NCBI RefSeq assembly: GCF_018350175.1
Contig: NC_058374.1
Span: 141,856,001 to 141,920,000, forward strand
Length of the DNA stretch: 64,000 nt
Direction: 5' to 3'
Origin: Felis catus
Taxonomy: Eukaryota
Within the stretch, counting starts at the first letter, position 1; every line of letters starts with the position of its first letter. Shown here piece by piece: positions 18,507 to 45,364 of the stretch. The position numbers and the translations under genes were made by a program. A model generated the notes under the pieces. That model was not told where the DNA came from, ran no database searches, and worked only from the letters and a program-made list of their open reading frames with translations.

Positions 18507-19307
18507 TCAGTGCAGGACGCTGCGGAAGGCAGCCATGTGGCGCCTCACGCTGTCTGCGATCTGCTCTGCTGATCTGGCCCGGCTGTAGTAGTCCGTGAAG
18601 AGGCCGTCAGGGCTGAGCAGGTAGATGGCAATGGAGTGGTCCACGATGTAATCCTGGTCCTCGTCCTTGGGGCCCGCGCTGTAGTACACGCGGTAGCTGC
18701 GGCTCACTTGGGCCACCTGCTCAGCAGAACCGGTCAGGCCCAGCAACCGTGGGTGGAAGTCCTGAACGTAGCGGGCCATGGCTGCGACAGTGTCCCGCTC
18801 GGGGTCCACAGTAATGAAGACAGGCTGCACCGGGGGCAGGCCGGGCTCAGCCTCCAGCTTCCGTACCACCTGCACCAGCTTCTCCAGCTCGTCTGGGCAG
18901 ATGTCGGGGCAGTGAGTGAACCCAAAGTACATCAGCACCCACTGACCCCGGAAGTCGGCTTTGCAGCGAGCCTGTCCCTGGTGGTCCAGCAGGCTGAAGT
19001 CCCCCTGGCCCACAGCTGCCTGGCGCAGGGCCTCTGTCCGCTGTTGCTGCCGCCGCTGCTCCTTCTCGGCCCTGGCAGCCAGCCAAGCCCCACCCAGCCC
19101 AGCCCCAAACAAGGCGGTGATCAACAGCCTGGTTCCAAGCCCAGGGCCCTGGGGCCGGCTCTGCCTGCCTGTGTCTCCAGGGCCCTGCCTTGACAGGAGC
19201 CGACACCTCACATGTCCGGCCTTGCCTCCCGGGGTCCAAACGAGGGCTGGGGGCTTCAGATGAGAGAGCCTGTGCCAAGCCTTGGGTGCCAGAACCAGCA
19301 GCAGCAT
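18507..19307 (-). CDS. SCO2: Cytochrome c oxidase assembly copper chaperone SCO2, single coding exon, 266 aa
   Basis: MLLLVLAPK... with TM segment [34 protein letters not shown] (CxxxC), YIVDHSI (copper-binding His). AG acceptor at 19321-19322, 13 nt upstream of the ATG. Confidence 0.97.
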
Positions 19308-20299: not shown

Positions 20300-20760
20300 G
20301 CGCACCTGTAAGGTCAGAAAGCTGGACACCGAGCCACACACCGAGCACGACCCAGTCTCCTCGGAACCCAGCGTAAGTACCGCGACTCAGGGGACAGCCC
20401 CGCTCTGCCAGAGCTCGTCACCGCTGTAGACTCAACCACGCTGCACTAGCGGAGCCGACAGATTCCTGCGCCACCGGTGCGCTCAACGCCAGCGCGCACG
20501 CTCATGGGCATGGCGCACGCGCAGACAAGCGTGAACGTCCGCGCTCCCCAGTCCCTGCTTCTCTGCGCGCGTGCGCAAAAGGTGGCGGGCCCAGCGCAGA
20601 GTTGGGCGGGGCGTCTCCCTGGCCCCGCCCCTTCGCGCTCTGTCCCGCGGCGGCCCGGCTTCCCTCGGAGACACTTCCCCCACTTCTTCTCGGTCTCGCC
20701 GGCCTTCCTGCGGTTTCGCCGCGGCCGTCTGTTCCGCAGTGTGTCGATCGGCGCGCGCGG
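20300..20760 (-). promoter_or_regulatory. SCO2 CpG-island promoter / non-coding first exon region
   Basis: CpG-dense; NRF1-like GCGCACGCGCA (20513-20523) and TGCGCGCGTGCGCA (20564-20577); GC boxes at about 20605-20630. Exact exon 1 limits not determined. Confidence 0.7.
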
Positions 20761-21467
20761 GCGGCGGCGGGAAGAGGTCGGCAAAGGACGAGGAGGTGGC
20801 GAAGGGCGCGCGGTCCGAGGGCACGACGACCCCTGCAGGGCCAGCCTCCGGCCCACGCCGACCTACAGTTCAGCTTCCACCTCCCGCCGGAGTGGATGCC
20901 TCGCGTGGCTGCGCCCGGATGAGTTGTGCGGTGCCGGCCGGAGGCGGGGGGCCAGGGGTGAGAATCCGGGCTCGGGGAAGGAAAGGGGATGGGAACTCGG
21001 AGAAGGGAAGGGGCCTGGGTTGGTGGGGAGGGACGGAGGTCTCCCGGCGCCCACTGTCCATGGGCACGTGCAGCTCCTCCTCGGGGCGCGGGGGTCCGGG
21101 AGCATAGGCCTGGAGCCAGGCCCAGGTCCAGGCTCTGCTCCCGGGCATCCACTCGAACCGCCCCTGGGCCGGGCGGTCCTCCAGCTCCCAGGAGGCACAT
21201 GGGACCAGACCGCCAGAGTCATGCAGGGGAAGTTGAGCTCACGTTAGAAGACCTACCCCAAACAGGCCACAGCCACACTGGGATTCCCATAGGACACACG
21301 AACTCCAGCAGGCACAGGTGCTCCCCAGGACTCTTGCCAGCTGCTGGGTGTGACTAGGGAATGCTTCAAGTCCACCACCGGAGGGGATGGGCTGTCCACC
21401 ATCTTCTGACTGAGGATGGAGGGGGTGGTGACGCAGAGGGGTCTGGAGCTTTTTCGGAGATGTGGCG

Positions 21468-21984
21468 TGTGAGAAGTGAGGTGATTCATTTTCAGAAACA
21501 CCAAATAAAAGTTGTGCTGTCTACTTAAGAATAGGTTTATAACCTATTGGAAATATGTATGAACCTCCCCCCCCCCCCCCCCCCCCCCCCCCCCCGCCAG
21601 AGTCCCAAACCCTTAGGCACTTCACTTCCTGGTTCTTCCCCTCTCCTTTTGCGGCCTTATTTTCTTGGGCTTTGCAGTTAGCGTGCACCAAAGAACTGAA
21701 GTCTGCCTCACCTCAGGGAATGTACATTTGTTCCAACCAGACTACTTTGTGCCTTCCGTGGGCAGAGGCGACCTCTGGGGAAGGCTGTAACCTCTGTAGT
21801 ACTCACCAATGAAGAATAAGGGGAGGGACTTCACGCTAGGAGATAAATTGCCTGCCATAACCGCCCTGGGTGTGCCTGTCCCTTAGACACCGCTCTTGCA
21901 AGAACGTTGATTAGAGCCTGGCTTCACTGTGCTCTGAGCCTCCGTGTCCTTCCTTCGAGTGGGTCGGTGGGCTTATTTCTCACA
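21468..21984. mobile_element. Solo LTR of an endogenous retrovirus (probably ERV1 class) in TYMP intron 5
   Basis: 517 bp bounded by 8-bp inverted termini TGTGAGAA...TTCTCACA; flanks GGCG / GGGG look like a decayed 4-bp TSD; TATA-like GATAAAT near 21842; internal C29 tract. Confidence 0.75.
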
Positions 21985-22439
21985 GGGGTATACTGACTCT
22001 TGGGTCAGTCATGAGGGTTTAGGGACCCTGAGTGTTGAGGATCAAGTCCCCTGTTGTACCTGCAACGGGCTTGGTGGGTTGTGCATCAGTCAGGTCACCT
22101 TTCTGAGTTGGTGGTCAGGGATCTTGTGATGGTACGCTGACCCTGGGGTCTATTCAGATCACCAGTGATTGGGGGAAGCCCCATGGTCTCCTGATGAGAG
22201 GACCCTGACTGTGTGGGTCAGAGGTCAGGGGTTTTTAACATGCAGGAAGTAGACCTGGAGTCTGAGGTCAGGTTACCTGTGATGACTAGCAGGGTGTCAA
22301 TGGAGACTGACACTCACTCTGGCTTCATACAGGAGTCCGTCCACAGGAACCAGCTTCTTGCCCTGACCCATAGGACTGCGCCCACTCCCTCCAGCAGCCC
22401 TTACATCCGGCCAGACTACCCTGCATCAGGACTTCCAGG

Positions 22440-22810
22440 GACCCCCTTCACTGACCCTGATCAAGGATTCATCAGCAACCATGACAGGTGTCCAAGACCA
22501 TGACCAGAAACTTCTGAACAATTCTGGTAATTCCTCATTAATGACTGGTCTGACCCATCAGGTATAATGACCAATGTCCTGTGGCCCATTAAGGATTGAT
22601 CAGAGAGCCCAATGGTGATTGTTATCAAGTCCCTATTAATGACTCCAATCAAGGTTTCACTGATGATGTGACCAAAGTTCAATGACCATCAGTGACCCAT
22701 AAATAACTTTGATCAATATCCTCATTAGTGACCCTGATTAATGACCTATCAGTGATTCTTCAGAGATTCTGGCCAATATTACCATCAAGAACCTAGATCA
22801 ATGACCAGTG
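22440..22810. repeat. Degenerate TGACC/TGATC-rich low-complexity repeat in TYMP intron 4
   Basis: Recurrent atgacc, tgatca and ccatca motifs, AT-richer than the flanks. Confidence 0.65.
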
Positions 22811-24232
22811 GCCCACCTGTACCTGCTCTTAACTCTGGATGAGGGTGAATCCAGGAATAGACTCCAGTTTATTGGCGGGGCTTCCTCCCCGGCCCCACCC
22901 CTCCCTTCCCCACCAGGGTACCTCAAACCACATCCGTTGGTCATTGGTACCTGCTGGGCAGGGATGCTGAGTACACCTGCACACCTGCTCCTCCTCTACC
23001 TCCACCATTCTCTCTCACTTTCCCTGGTTAGGGCTTCAGCTGGAGTTAAGCATTTAGTAAGTAGTTGTATGTGCAGCTGGTGGAGAGGGAATGGGAAAGA
23101 AATTGTTTTGATTTGGTATGGGGAGTGACGAGGAGGAGGCTAGTACCTACCCCTAGGAGCACAAGTCTGGGGAACCAAGAGAGAGGAGTACCCAGCTCTC
23201 CCCTTGGGAGTCCTGAGTGGGGTACCCAAGGGGGAGCTGGAGAACTTGGTCCTGTTATGGGGGCTGATGGGGTGGGGGGAACCTAAATTCCATCCTGGGG
23301 GTGAGAAGCCTGGACCCCATCTTTGGGGGACTTTGTCTAGGCCAGGCTTGAAGTTGGAGATTGCCTGTAGGCTGCTAACTGACCTCTTTGAGGTCAGACG
23401 TTCTGGTCTGGAGAGGAGGCATCTTCTAACCTTGTAGCCTATAGCCAGCCGGGTAGGTACCAGGTCCAGGCTGACCTTGTCACCCACTCCCCTTGTAGAA
23501 TCTTGTTCATGAGTTGCAGGCATAAGGCCTCTGGCAGCTCCAGCTGCTGTCCAGACCTGGCCAGGGCCTGGGTCAGCACCACTTTCTTCTTCAGATCTAT
23601 GCCTCCCAGTGGCATGGCCACTAGCACGGCCTCTAGGCATGGAATACGGTGGTGGTGTAGCCATGGGGGGGGGGGGGGGAGGGGGGAGGTGTGTTGTGTT
23701 CTCACAGCGGTGGGTTATCTTGAGGTCACTGACAGTGCTGGGGCACTGTCCCCAGGACAGTTGTGGCGTCCCCAGGGGAAAGCGGTCTCGGGCTGACCTC
23801 AGGGTTAGGGGTGCCCAGAAGTTCCCACGCACCGATTTGCGCGCCCTGCGCCCTCCCCAACATAGCGCACACGAAGCCCCGCAGGTCCCCCTAGCTCAGG
23901 GGGCTTTCGTCTCTCTTCAGGCGGGTCAGACCCGGGAGTTGCTTGAGCTCCCTCCCCCTGAAAGGTCACCAGGCGCCCCTGGGCCGTGGGTCCCTAGGAC
24001 GCCATCGCTCCGAGCCTGCGGGGTGCGAGACCGCCGGAACCTGCGGCCGCCCTGTGTCCGGGTGTCTGCAGCAGGTGTACCTGTCCCGACCCTGATCCCG
24101 GTCTCTCCCTCTCATGTCCGCCCCTCTGTACCGTGTCTGTGGTGCCCGTGTGCGTGTCTCCGTGTCTGGCTCCTACTCGTCGGCCTCACAGCCTGACCCC
24201 GGCCTGTACCTGTCCGGTACGGCGGCCCTCAC

Positions 24233-24420
24233 CTATCCTGCTCCAGACTCCGGGCGGGTGCGGTTTGTCGTCCCGCGGCCACAGGACGGCGGGTGGGCGG
24301 GGTCTCCCGGACAGGCGGGACTCTCGGCCAATGGTCGCCCCAGGCCCTTCTGTCTCGGCCAATCAGGAAGGCCCGCGGGCGCGCCCCTTCCGGGACTTCC
24401 CGGGCCGGCCCGCCCGCGGA
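24233..24420 (-). promoter_or_regulatory. Retained TYMP-position promoter / exon 1
   Basis: Two CCAAT boxes 31 bp apart (24328-24332, 24359-24363), GC boxes, NF-kB-like GGGACTTCCC (24392-24401), intact AG|GTGAGG donor at 24233/24232, CpG-dense. Confidence 0.6.
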
Positions 24421-24561: not shown

Positions 24562-26466
<1,905 letters not shown>

Positions 26467-41300: not shown

Positions 41301-41752
41301 TGAGGCTGGACACAGGCTGAGAGTTGGAACAATAGGGTGGAGATCTGGGGGGCTGTGAGGGTCTGTGAGGGTCTGGGATACCGGAACAGCTTTGGGGAAC
41401 GGTGTCACTCGCCACTGGAACCTGTGGAAAAAGGAGAAGGGGCGGGTTTGCCTGCAGAGGCCCCTGAGCTCCTGGAGCTCTTGTGCATTATGTTGTCTCC
41501 GGACAGCTCCACCTAGACAAACCCCCAATCTGGGTGTGGGCGAAGAGACACCCCCCCGCCCCGCTCAGGCCAGGCAGAGAGACTGTCCCCCAGCACAGGT
41601 CCACCTTAACTGGGCAGCCCTGTGGGCGGGGCGCATTGTTGATGCCTGTGCAGACAGCAGTCCAGGCCCGAGTGTGGGACAGACTTACAGGCAGCACTCC
41701 AAGCTTCCAGCCTGCGACCCAGCTCCTCACGCTGAGTCTGCAGCCCCGCACC

Positions 41753-44700
41753 ATGGTCCAGGGGGCCTCGGAGCCTGATGGCCCCGGCTGGGGCTGGGAT
41801 GGGGAGGATGACTGGGACAGCGCTGTCCTCACCCTGCTGGCGCTGGCTGTGGTGGCTGCCACGGCACTGGCTTTGCACTGGTTTGGCTCTGGGCAGGACC
41901 AGGAGGCGGCAGGACCTGCATCCACGACCCCCGGGGCCCAGCCTTCTCAGGCTGGAGGAGCCAGCCCAGCCCTGCCCCTGCAGCCCAAGGTCAGTGGTGG
42001 CGTCGAGGGACACAGCTCAGGGCAGGGGCAGCCAGACCCTCCAGGACGTGGCCAGGGGAGTCCAGCTGCAGCAGGGGCCCAAGATCAGGAGCTCCGGGGA
42101 GGTGGCCTGGCTGCCACAGCGGCACCTCCACTCAAGACACCCGGCGAGGTGGCCAGTGGAGGGGCCTTGGAACGGCAGCACGACAGTGCCACTCCGGAAG
42201 CCCTGCGAGGTAAAGGAAGGGAGCCTCTCAGGCCAGATACTGCCTTCCTGGGTCGGAGCAAAGTAGGGGGGACATCCGGCCCCCTCCTGATACACTTCAC
42301 CCCTCGGAGTCCTGGCAGAGAGACTGAAGGGCAAGTGGAGGCAGGAGGTGTTCGAGCCAAGGTGCCAGCTCACCAGGCCCTGGTCCACACAGCAGAACAG
42401 GACACCAGCCCCTGGCAACAAGGTGTAGGGCCACCTGGCTCGCTAGAGAGAGGCCGAAGAAGCCGGCGGTGGCAGGTGGACCAAGGCTCGGAAGATAGAC
42501 ACCGCCGCCTCCCAAAGCTGGACCCCCTCCGCCTGGGCTCTGTGGTGAGTGTGTGGGATGCCGTGGATGCAGCCAGCAGCCTCTCCACAGGCTCCCAGAG
42601 GCCTCCTCTCCCCTTGGAGCTGCCTCCACCACGTGCCACGCAGACTGGGCCCTTGACAGAGGGCACAGTGAAGGGGCACAGGGAGAGCAGCCTCCATCCA
42701 GCCTCAGTCCTAGCTCTGGAGAGCAGGGAGGCTGGGCCCCAGGCTCCCAGGGAGTCTCAGGGACCCCCAGCCTCCGTGGAAGGCTGGCCGTGGGAGAGGA
42801 GCTTCGTCCAGACCCCAGACTCCATGGGCCCATGGCCAGAGGGGTCGCAATGCGGACATCCACTCTTGTCTCAAGGACGGGGGACCGCAGACGCCAGCAA
42901 TGCGGTAAAGGCTGGGGCTCAAGGCTCTGGAGACCGCTCTTTCTTCAGCTCAGGGCCGGGTGGGGCAGAGCAGCAACGGGGCCATGGCCTCCTAGAAGGG
43001 AGACCATCTTGGCAAGGCCAGCGCGGGCAGAGCATCGGGCAGGAGGCAGGCAGTCTGGACACAGAAAAGCGCCCCCCAGACACCCCTGGCTCAGCCACGC
43101 TCTCCCCGCGCATCCCTAAACCCCTCCCGCCCTTGGCTTCCCCGCCCACAGCACATCCCCACGGAGGCCTCTTACCTGCAGGCTCAACCCTTCCGACCTC
43201 CTCTCCTTCAGACTCTTTGTCCCTCAGAGTTAGTCAGGGTTCTGCCGAGGATGAAACTCTCAGGGCAGTGTCAGCCCCAGCCCCAGCCCCAGCCCCAGCC
43301 CCTGCCCCTGCCCCTGCTCCAACTCCGCCCTCCTCCCCAGCCCCAGCCCCAGCCCCTGCCCCTGCCCCTGCTCCAACTCCGCCCTCCTCCCCAGCCCCTG
43401 CCCCAGCCCCAGCCCCAGTTCCGACCCCTGTCCGGAGTAGTGAGTCAAGGCCTATGTCCCAGGAGCCCAGTGTGGCTCTCTGCAAGGACAACCAGGAAGG
43501 GCAGATCTCATCTAGCTGGGAAAACCTTATTTCGATGGTTCTTAGGAGTCACCCTTTCCCCAGGCAAGAGAGGCGCCAAGGGAGAGCCCCAAGGGCAGCT
43601 CCCAGGAGCCCTAGAGATCCCAGCACTGATGCACCCTCTGAGAACAGAGAGTCTGGTTCTCCCCCCGAAGGGGCCGCCACCAGCCTGGAGGTCAGGAATG
43701 GCTCCGCCGTTGGAATGGTCACAGAAGCTGGCACAGGGGGCCTGCCTGAGGCTGGGTGTCCGCAACAGCAGAGAAGCTCGGATACCAGGGAGGCTCCTAC
43801 TCCAGACCCTCCCTCAGGCCCAAGGCCAGATGCAGTGGATGAGAGACATCCAGACTCCCCACTGCCTGGAGCCGCAATGCCTGGGGCCCCATCACGGTCC
43901 CCTGGGCAGAGGCAACCCAGCCCTGTACCCTCCCCCACCGCTAGGGGGGTCTCACAGCCTGTCCCACGGCCCCGGAAACGCAGCATGTGTGAAATAGCAG
44001 AGAGCTCTGAGCGGGAGGTCAGCCAGATGGTACCACTGAGGCAGGAGGGAGAGGCTCCAGGGGAGAGGCCCCGCCCTGCAGGCAGCGGGGCAGTCCTCAC
44101 AGAAAAGCAGGAGGCCCGAAAACTCAAGGTGCTTCTGCAGAGGCCCGGGAGCCGGGGGGTGGCGGAGGGGCCTCGGAAGCCCAGCTCCCTAGCCCGGGAG
44201 CCCACTCTGGCCGCGGCTCGACGACAGCGGCTGGACCTGGGCAGCTGCCTGGATGTACTGGCCTTTGCCCAGCAGCACGGGCAGCCTGGCCTGGTGCAGG
44301 AGACCTATGCGCTGATGAGCGACAATCTGCTGCACGTGCTAGGAGACCCGGGCCTCTACCGGCAGCTGAGCGGGGCCGAGCGGGAGCGCATCCTGAGCCT
44401 TCGGACGGGCCGGGGCCAGGCGGTGGTGGGGGTCCTTGTGCTGCCCAGCCTCTACCCGCTGAGCCGCTCGGGGCTCACAAGGGGCCCTTGTGGGGAGGAG
44501 GCCCCTACGGCGGGACCCGCACCCCTGCCTCCTCGCACGCACCTGCACGTGTTCAACCCCCAAGAAAACACATGGCGGCCCCTGACACAGGTGCCGGAGG
44601 AGGCCCCGCTGCGGGGCTGTGGCCTCTGCACCATGCACAACTACCTGTTCCTGGCGGGGGGCATCCGCGGCTCCGGTGCCAAGGCTGTCTGCTCCAACGA

Positions 44701-45364
44701 GGTCTTCTGCTACAACCCACTGACCAACATCTGGAGCCAGGTGCGGCCCATGCAGCAGGCCCGTGCCCAGCTCAAGCTGGTGGCCCTGGATGGGCTTCTT
44801 TACGCCATCGGTGGAGAGTGCCTGTACAGCATGGAGCGCTATGACCCGCGCACGGATGCCTGGACCTCGCGCGCGCCCCTCCCTGCGGGCACCTTCCCTG
44901 TGGCACACGAGGCTGTGGCCTGCCGTGGGGACATCTATGTCACTGGGGGCCACCTCTTCTACCGCTTGCTCAGGTACAGCCCTGCGAAGGATGCGTGGGA
45001 TGAGTGCCCCTACAGTGCCAGCCACCGGCGTCCCAGCGACATGGTGGCATTGGGAGGTTTCCTGTACCGCTTCGACCTGCTGCGGGGTGTGGGCGCTGCG
45101 GTGATGCGCTACAACACTGTAACGGGCTCCTGGAGCCGGGCTGCCTCCCTGCCCCTGCCCGACCCGGCCCCCCTGCACTGCACCGCACTGGGCAACACCA
45201 TTTACTGCCTCAACCACCAGGTCACCGCCACCTTTACGGTCTCTGAGGGGACTGCCCAGTTCCAGGCCAGGGAGTTGCAACCCTTTCCTCTGGGGAGTAA
45301 GGGGGTCCTCTGTCCATTCATCTTGACTCTGCCTGCCACCGACCGGCTGCAAACAGCCCTCTGA
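41753..45364 (+). CDS. KLHDC7B: Kelch domain-containing protein 7B, intronless long isoform (1203 aa); a short isoform could start at ATG 43535 (MVLRSHPFPRQ, 609 aa)
   Basis: Strong Kozak gcaccATGG; N-terminal hydrophobic segment SAVLTLLALAVVAATALALHWF; long low-complexity middle; C-terminal kelch repeats (YLFLAGG, LYAIGG, IYVTGG); syntenic position. Confidence 0.93.
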   Translation: MVQGASEPDGPGWGWDGEDDWDSAVLTLLALAVVAATALALHWFGSGQDQEAAGPASTTPGAQPSQAGGASPALPLQPKVSGGVEGHSSGQGQPDPPGRGQGSPAAAGAQDQELRGGGLAATAAPPLKTPGEVASGGALERQHDSATPEALRGKGREPLRPDTAFLGRSKVGGTSGPLLIHFTPRSPGRETEGQVEAGGVRAKVPAHQALVHTAEQDTSPWQQGVGPPGSLERGRRSRRWQVDQGSEDRHRRLPKLDPLRLGSVVSVWDAVDAASSLSTGSQRPPLPLELPPPRATQTGPLTEGTVKGHRESSLHPASVLALESREAGPQAPRESQGPPASVEGWPWERSFVQTPDSMGPWPEGSQCGHPLLSQGRGTADASNAVKAGAQGSGDRSFFSSGPGGAEQQRGHGLLEGRPSWQGQRGQSIGQEAGSLDTEKRPPDTPGSATLSPRIPKPLPPLASPPTAHPHGGLLPAGSTLPTSSPSDSLSLRVSQGSAEDETLRAVSAPAPAPAPAPAPAPAPTPPSSPAPAPAPAPAPAPTPPSSPAPAPAPAPVPTPVRSSESRPMSQEPSVALCKDNQEGQISSSWENLISMVLRSHPFPRQERRQGRAPRAAPRSPRDPSTDAPSENRESGSPPEGAATSLEVRNGSAVGMVTEAGTGGLPEAGCPQQQRSSDTREAPTPDPPSGPRPDAVDERHPDSPLPGAAMPGAPSRSPGQRQPSPVPSPTARGVSQPVPRPRKRSMCEIAESSEREVSQMVPLRQEGEAPGERPRPAGSGAVLTEKQEARKLKVLLQRPGSRGVAEGPRKPSSLAREPTLAAARRQRLDLGSCLDVLAFAQQHGQPGLVQETYALMSDNLLHVLGDPGLYRQLSGAERERILSLRTGRGQAVVGVLVLPSLYPLSRSGLTRGPCGEEAPTAGPAPLPPRTHLHVFNPQENTWRPLTQVPEEAPLRGCGLCTMHNYLFLAGGIRGSGAKAVCSNEVFCYNPLTNIWSQVRPMQQARAQLKLVALDGLLYAIGGECLYSMERYDPRTDAWTSRAPLPAGTFPVAHEAVACRGDIYVTGGHLFYRLLRYSPAKDAWDECPYSASHRRPSDMVALGGFLYRFDLLRGVGAAVMRYNTVTGSWSRAASLPLPDPAPLHCTALGNTIYCLNHQVTATFTVSEGTAQFQARELQPFPLGSKGVLCPFILTLPATDRLQTAL
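43273..43420 (+). repeat. Coding Pro-Ala repeat with a 54-bp tandem duplication in KLHDC7B
   Basis: (GCCCCA/T)n hexamers; CTCCAACTCC recurs at 43317 and 43371. Confidence 0.9.

Follow-up and report, generated by a model that had tools for sequence, protein, structure and literature searches.

Does the domestic cat still make thymidine phosphorylase (TP), the product of TYMP? In humans, biallelic loss of this gene causes mitochondrial neurogastrointestinal encephalomyopathy (MNGIE), and the enzyme both activates capecitabine and its intermediate 5′-deoxy-5-fluorouridine (5′-DFUR) and degrades trifluridine. The question arises from a 64-kb stretch of the Felis catus genome (contig NC_058374.1; hereafter the window, in which position 1 is the first letter), for which a preliminary description had claimed an old loss of TYMP at its orthologous locus. 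Our analysis supports this claim through conserved gene order, remnants lying on the same strand, many independent lesions and decay that has carried the exons beyond the reach of Pfam. The locus is almost certainly a TYMP unitary pseudogene of a felid, situated at the ancestral site between ODF3B and SCO2 and, as read from its sequence, making no enzyme. Its extent is as follows.

About 20,765–24,005, minus strand: TYMP remnants, a colinear series of coding-exon remnants between SCO2 and ODF3B

Three-frame translation of the minus strand from 20.5 to 24.3 kb revealed no long open reading frame (ORF), and instead short TP-like stretches that switch from one frame to another. Stop-free pieces were searched singly, one exon remnant at a time, against the PDB (177,635 distinct sequences). 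The references for comparison were human TP stretches taken from the PDB alignments, the N-terminus of a colobine TYMP and E. coli DeoA from the annotated MG1655 record. Seven separate pieces had TP as their first PDB match, in colinear order, and the matched stretches are these:

23887–23825, minus strand: TP residues 53–74
23633–23496, minus strand: TP residues 72–117, E-value 1e-7
23508–23425, minus strand: TP residues 114–141, in a different frame from the piece matching residues 72–117
22924–22832, minus strand: TP residues 139–169
22380–22318, minus strand: TP residues 182–202
20833–20768, minus strand: TP residues 457–478

Wherever any PDB match arose, TP ranked first, and it was the sole match except for the piece covering residues 114–141. 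Apart from the value of 1e-7 for residues 72–117, the single E-values were weak, from 0.06 to 1. Judged by these alignments, however, the recurrence of the same family, in order, along one strand cannot be chance.

The two other references gave colinear similarity on the same strand. A tblastn search with the colobine N-terminus (P0021/P0032, named thymidine phosphorylase in UniRef) matched exon 2 with an E-value of 4e-10 and exon 3 with one of 2e-9. With E. coli DeoA, the best tblastn matches in the whole 64 kb fell at the TYMP locus, the top one being in exon 4. DeoA residues 83–106 aligned with exon 3 and residues 125–135 with exon 4, each score being equalled by none of 2000 shuffles. Exon 5 was matched by residues 154–171 (13/2000 shuffles) and, colinearly, by residues 173–184 (138/2000), and the first 19 codons of exon 6 by residues 186–204 (12/2000).

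Profile searches illustrated how far the decay has gone. None of the Pfam domains of TP (Glycos_trans_3N, Glycos_transf_3 and PYNP_C) was found in ten stop-free pieces at E-values up to 1. The NCBIfam thymidine phosphorylase model NF004490, whose curated threshold is 269 bits, matched no more than 28 residues of exon 3, with an E-value of 0.015. In the PDB search, the pieces from exon 6 and from exons 8/9 retrieved nothing. A long frame-2 piece running across exon 10 returned one irrelevant weak PDB match, and the TP match there emerged once the piece had been cut to 35 amino acids. When protein representatives were searched with the exon-3 piece, only six short ORFs came back, none of them a full-length TYMP.

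Eight coding-exon remnants could be delimited, numbered from exon 2 as the first coding exon. The second half of exon 6 and exons 7, 8 and 9 were read by eye against human TP stretches 337–386, 380–389 and 405–416.

23825–24005, minus strand: first coding exon (exon 2), from tblastn with the colobine TYMP, the PDB match to TP 53–74 and a codon check
23431–23632, minus strand: exon 3, AG acceptor and GT donor kept
22823–22950, minus strand: exon 4, AG acceptor and GT donor kept
22277–22406, minus strand: exon 5, from the PDB match to TP 182–202 and from DeoA; GT donor kept
21256–21422, minus strand: exon 6, from DeoA 186–204 for the first 19 codons, the second half by eye
21052–21187, minus strand: exon 8, by eye against human TP 337–386
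20841–20934, minus strand: exon 9, by eye against human TP 405–416
20765–20840, minus strand: last exon, second half only, with TP 457–478 as the sole PDB match

The first coding exon opens with the ancestral ATG at 24003–24005, followed by a TAG at codon 4 (23994–23996) and a second TAG at 23891–23893. Against the colobine TYMP, residues 7–23 and 34–73 of this exon lie in different frames, with about 10 residues absent between the matched blocks and one further codon deleted, in agreement with the exon-2 indels described earlier. In exon 3, the PDB match switches frame within the HSTGG motif, in its His codon (about 23499–23501), which is consistent with the 1-bp deletion that had been proposed there, and the shifted frame terminates at a TAG at 23439–23441. 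Exon 4 has lost its SGRGLGHTGGT motif; T-N-G-C-G-L is found instead, followed by an insertion, so that 53 nucleotides stand in place of the expected 8 codons (24 nucleotides). This reproduces the net gain of 29 nucleotides given in the preliminary description. A TAA at 22829–22831 then takes the place of Pro after IQS.

The acceptor of exon 5 reads GG instead of AG (22407–22408), and a TAA occupies codon 2 (22401–22403). Further into this exon we found a −1 shift and then a +1 shift with a TGA at 22314–22316, neither of which had been described before. Exon 6 begins at about 21422 and, as previously suggested, lacks an AG before it (the sequence there reads CCACCC); at least two frame changes occur within its match, with stops after it. 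Of exon 7 there is at most a short vestige near 21195–21245, seen by eye. By the same reading, exon 8 consists of three frame segments (two frameshifts) with an internal deletion, and no tool gave a significant match to it. Our reading thus agrees with the earlier account of exon-8 frameshifts and of a missing exon 7, except that a short vestige of the latter may remain. Exon 9 starts near 20934 with CG where the AG acceptor is expected, contains a TAG at 20863–20865 and, by eye, changes frame and has an internal deletion. Two lesions at the 3′ end add to those previously listed: a deletion of intron 9 together with about 20 codons has joined the end of exon 9 to the last exon's second half, and the terminal stop of TYMP is gone. 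A codon check placed all five of the previously reported stops (two in exon 2 and one each in exons 4, 5 and 9) exactly where they had been said to lie, and the loss of the acceptor in exons 5 and 9 was confirmed as well.

An uninterrupted coding sequence (CDS) of about 480 codons was not found, given the TAG at codon 4 and the stops and frame changes in most exons. Neither phosphate-binding motif survives: K-H-S-T-G-G is frameshifted in its His codon, and S-G-R-G-L-G-H-T-G-G-T is replaced. Because of the codon-4 stop, the frameshifts, stops, deletions and lost splice sites in most exons, and the destruction of both motifs, this TYMP cannot encode the enzyme.

Lesions of this sort could be sequencing or assembly errors in a gene that is really intact, and two long homopolymers do occur at the locus, one of 29 C on the plus strand at 21567–21595 and one of the form C6-T-C15 on the minus strand at about 23665–23686. 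Such sites are prone to length errors, yet both lie in former introns, outside the exon remnants. The lesions themselves number more than 15 and are of varied kinds (stops, the 29-nucleotide insertion, deletions of several codons, splice-site losses), whereas the adjoining SCO2 and Kelch ORFs are clean. The exon-3 frameshift was moreover recovered from other sequences. An ORF present on two ENA contigs (P0016) equals the frame-shifted exon-3 reading of the window exactly, a near-identical ORF is carried by a Logan contig (P0023), and the Puma concolor protein XP_025782273.1 (P0022) carries this shifted frame too. Since Puma and independent ENA contigs share it, this frameshift is not an assembly error. 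In the published account of TYMP loss, the mutations were validated with reads or with the genomes of sister species (PMC7671337). That the cat TYMP is really intact is hardly credible on this evidence.

Related TYMP pseudogene ORFs on other Logan contigs differ in exon 3. In P0020 this exon is still in frame, and P0018 and P0019 carry a different lesion, a large deletion after SGQQL; all three have the AIRL-to-AMPL substitutions in common with the window. As the exon-3 lesions differ among these ORFs and the window, some of them are lineage-specific and were added to an older loss.

The neighbouring genes were placed as follows.

18507–19307, minus strand: SCO2, an intact single-exon CDS of 266 amino acids and the downstream neighbour; Pfam SCO1-SenC, E-value 4e-49
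24582–26148 (about 24.6–26.15 kb), minus strand: coding exons of ODF3B, next upstream of TYMP and on its strand; Pfam SHIPPO-rpt
About 1.9–5.6 kb, minus strand: LMF2, from Pfam matches on exon pieces only
About 10.8–17.6 kb, plus strand: NCAPH2, from Pfam matches on exon pieces only
41483–45364, plus strand: KLHDC7B-like Kelch ORF, 1293 amino acids, uninterrupted

Pfam and tblastn together revealed the order ODF3B-TYMP-SCO2, with NCAPH2 and LMF2 on one side and the KLHDC7B-like ORF on the other. We take LMF2/NCAPH2-SCO2-TYMP-ODF3B-KLHDC7B to be the conserved mammalian order, on the model of the human locus at 22q13.33. With the Puma ODF3B model P0022 as query, tblastn placed the ODF3B exons at 26148–26038, 25895–25656 and 25517–25284. 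The SCO2 protein falls with felid SCO2 proteins in a 90% cluster; between it and those of Lynx, Prionailurus/Neofelis, Panthera and Leopardus there are 2 to 5 residue differences, as against 15 to 24 for those of hyaena and pinnipeds. By this protein the genome is that of a felid, probably Felis or a near relation. No N gaps occur inside 20.5–24.3 kb, the four gaps of the window being at 37.5, 48.7, 50.7 and 60.3 kb. The preliminary description had called the neighbouring frames intact. That is borne out by the 266-residue ORF of SCO2 and holds also for the KLHDC7B-like ORF, while LMF2 and NCAPH2 were sampled through their Pfam-matching exon pieces. In the 1293-residue Kelch ORF, the Kelch repeats are restricted to the C-terminal end (about residues 1020–1220), and the N-terminal region is long, of low complexity and rich in proline and alanine.

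A dead copy at the ancestral site would leave the animal with TP if a functional duplicate or retrocopy of TYMP lay elsewhere in the genome. In the 64-kb window, tblastn with the TYMP N-terminus gave no second locus, and functional duplicates were excluded for all species with the gene loss in the published survey (PMC7671337). A cat that is not TP-null is accordingly very improbable.

The enzyme could also be dead and a part of its gene reused. The Puma protein mentioned above, which NCBI annotates as 'outer dense fiber protein 3B', is a chimera that joins ODF3B residues 1–148 to the frame-shifted exon-3 remnant of TYMP, and in the window the donor of ODF3B (GT at 25280–25281, phase 1) is phase-compatible with the AG acceptor that exon 3 has kept. 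Read-through transcripts of felid ODF3B might then take in the remnant as an alternative coding exon at their 3′ end. This junction is, however, known from one predicted model only, and the C-terminal part of the chimera was unmatched among the proteins of 120–381 amino acids in the 5.8 billion searched. In the window the tail would also end earlier, at the TAG at 23439–23441 where Puma has Gln, and the differences between cat and Puma across the exon-3 stretch look neutral. We regard such reuse as unlikely. As for its more specific form, in which ODF3B transcripts would use the exon-3 acceptor to make a testis isoform with a new C-terminal tail derived from the TYMP remnant, that is, an exaptation of a pseudogene exon, it has at best an outside chance of being right. 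Because the database search gave no other protein with this junction, the Puma ODF3B-TYMP joint is most likely an annotation curiosity.

Composition varies along the locus. A CpG island at 20400–20900 (GC 0.71, CpG observed/expected 1.08) lies immediately upstream of SCO2, takes in the final exon remnants of TYMP and is probably the promoter or 5′ exon region of SCO2; it may have kept the 3′ end of the dead TYMP from outright deletion. CpG is still raised (observed/expected 0.71, GC 0.68) at the former 5′ end and promoter of TYMP, 23700–24300, which adjoins the 3′ end of ODF3B. Most of the former intron 4 is taken up by a degenerate repeat array at 22440–22815, whose units measure about 30 nucleotides, are 60–80% alike and carry TGACC..ATCAG / CATTAATGAC motifs.

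The many independent lesions of different kinds, together with the decay past Pfam recognition, indicate that the loss is old, and neither recent nor an artefact. In the history we propose, TYMP would have been inactivated in the carnivoran ancestor and then eroded neutrally, which fits the amount and variety of the decay, its presence in other felids and the published account. Thymidine and deoxyuridine would be cleaved by uridine phosphorylase (UPP1/UPP2) instead, a step drawn from the literature and not from the window, which would explain why no MNGIE-like disease accompanies the loss of TYMP. An alternative catabolic route for thymidine had been suggested in the preliminary description, and the same proposal, a UPP1 of broader specificity, is in print (PMC7671337).

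Several points weigh against an old unitary loss compensated in this way. The lesion checks rest on the assembled sequence and on ORFs, and the cross-sequence check covers the exon-3 frameshift. The second half of exon 6 and exons 7, 8 and 9 were assigned by eye from partial human TP stretches. The search for a second copy covered the 64-kb window. Compensation by UPP1, finally, is a published hypothesis.

The loss of TYMP was already published in 2019, as one common to all carnivorans; the present reading is right but not novel. Sharma and Hiller (NAR Genom Bioinform 2019; PMC7671337) reported that TYMP was lost in six mammalian lineages, comprising 21 of 62 mammals. For Carnivora, one common loss was backed by shared mutations; the data set included the cat (felCat8), with the cheetah as sister species, and seven carnivorans were tabulated (PMC7671337). 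From that table we infer that all seven carnivorans must count among the 21 species, since 10 cetartiodactyls, 7 carnivorans and 3 afrotherians make up 20 of them. Functional duplicates were ruled out in all species with the loss and gene order was conserved; the same authors used the phrase "natural knockouts" and proposed that UPP1 with a broader substrate range compensates (PMC7671337). They also cited the Tymp knockout mouse, which is without overt disease, and the ability of murine uridine phosphorylase to cleave thymidine as well (PMC7671337). Our search of the literature on TP enzyme activity in cats and dogs found nothing specific, and no TP data for cats.

Cats, and carnivorans generally, would live without the enzyme whose loss underlies MNGIE. 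This matters for the interpretation of nucleoside-drug data obtained in cats and dogs, and for the question why the accumulation of thymidine is tolerated or avoided in carnivorans. The gene loss itself and its explanation through UPP1 have both been in print since 2019.

Compared with known systems, the cat locus agrees with the carnivoran TYMP loss of PMC7671337 in gene, in clade, in the type of evidence (stop codons, shifted frames, mutated splice sites and deleted exons, all at the syntenic locus), in the "natural knockout" framing and in the idea of UPP1 compensation. There is no substantive difference between the two; what is added here are coordinates for each exon and the Puma ODF3B chimera, on an assembly that is probably newer. 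The TYMP losses of other mammalian lineages are likewise independent unitary losses, but they are separate events with their own lesions, and in the tenrec the whole gene is deleted (PMC7671337). Mice lacking Tymp resemble carnivorans in the absence of TP without overt disease, and differ in that the knockout is engineered and the natural mouse Tymp is intact, whereas compensation by feline UPP1 is only hypothesised. With human TYMP and MNGIE, the cat shares the orthologous gene and a biallelic loss that abolishes thymidine phosphorylase; in humans, however, that loss is pathogenic, whereas it has become fixed in carnivorans, which evidently tolerate it.

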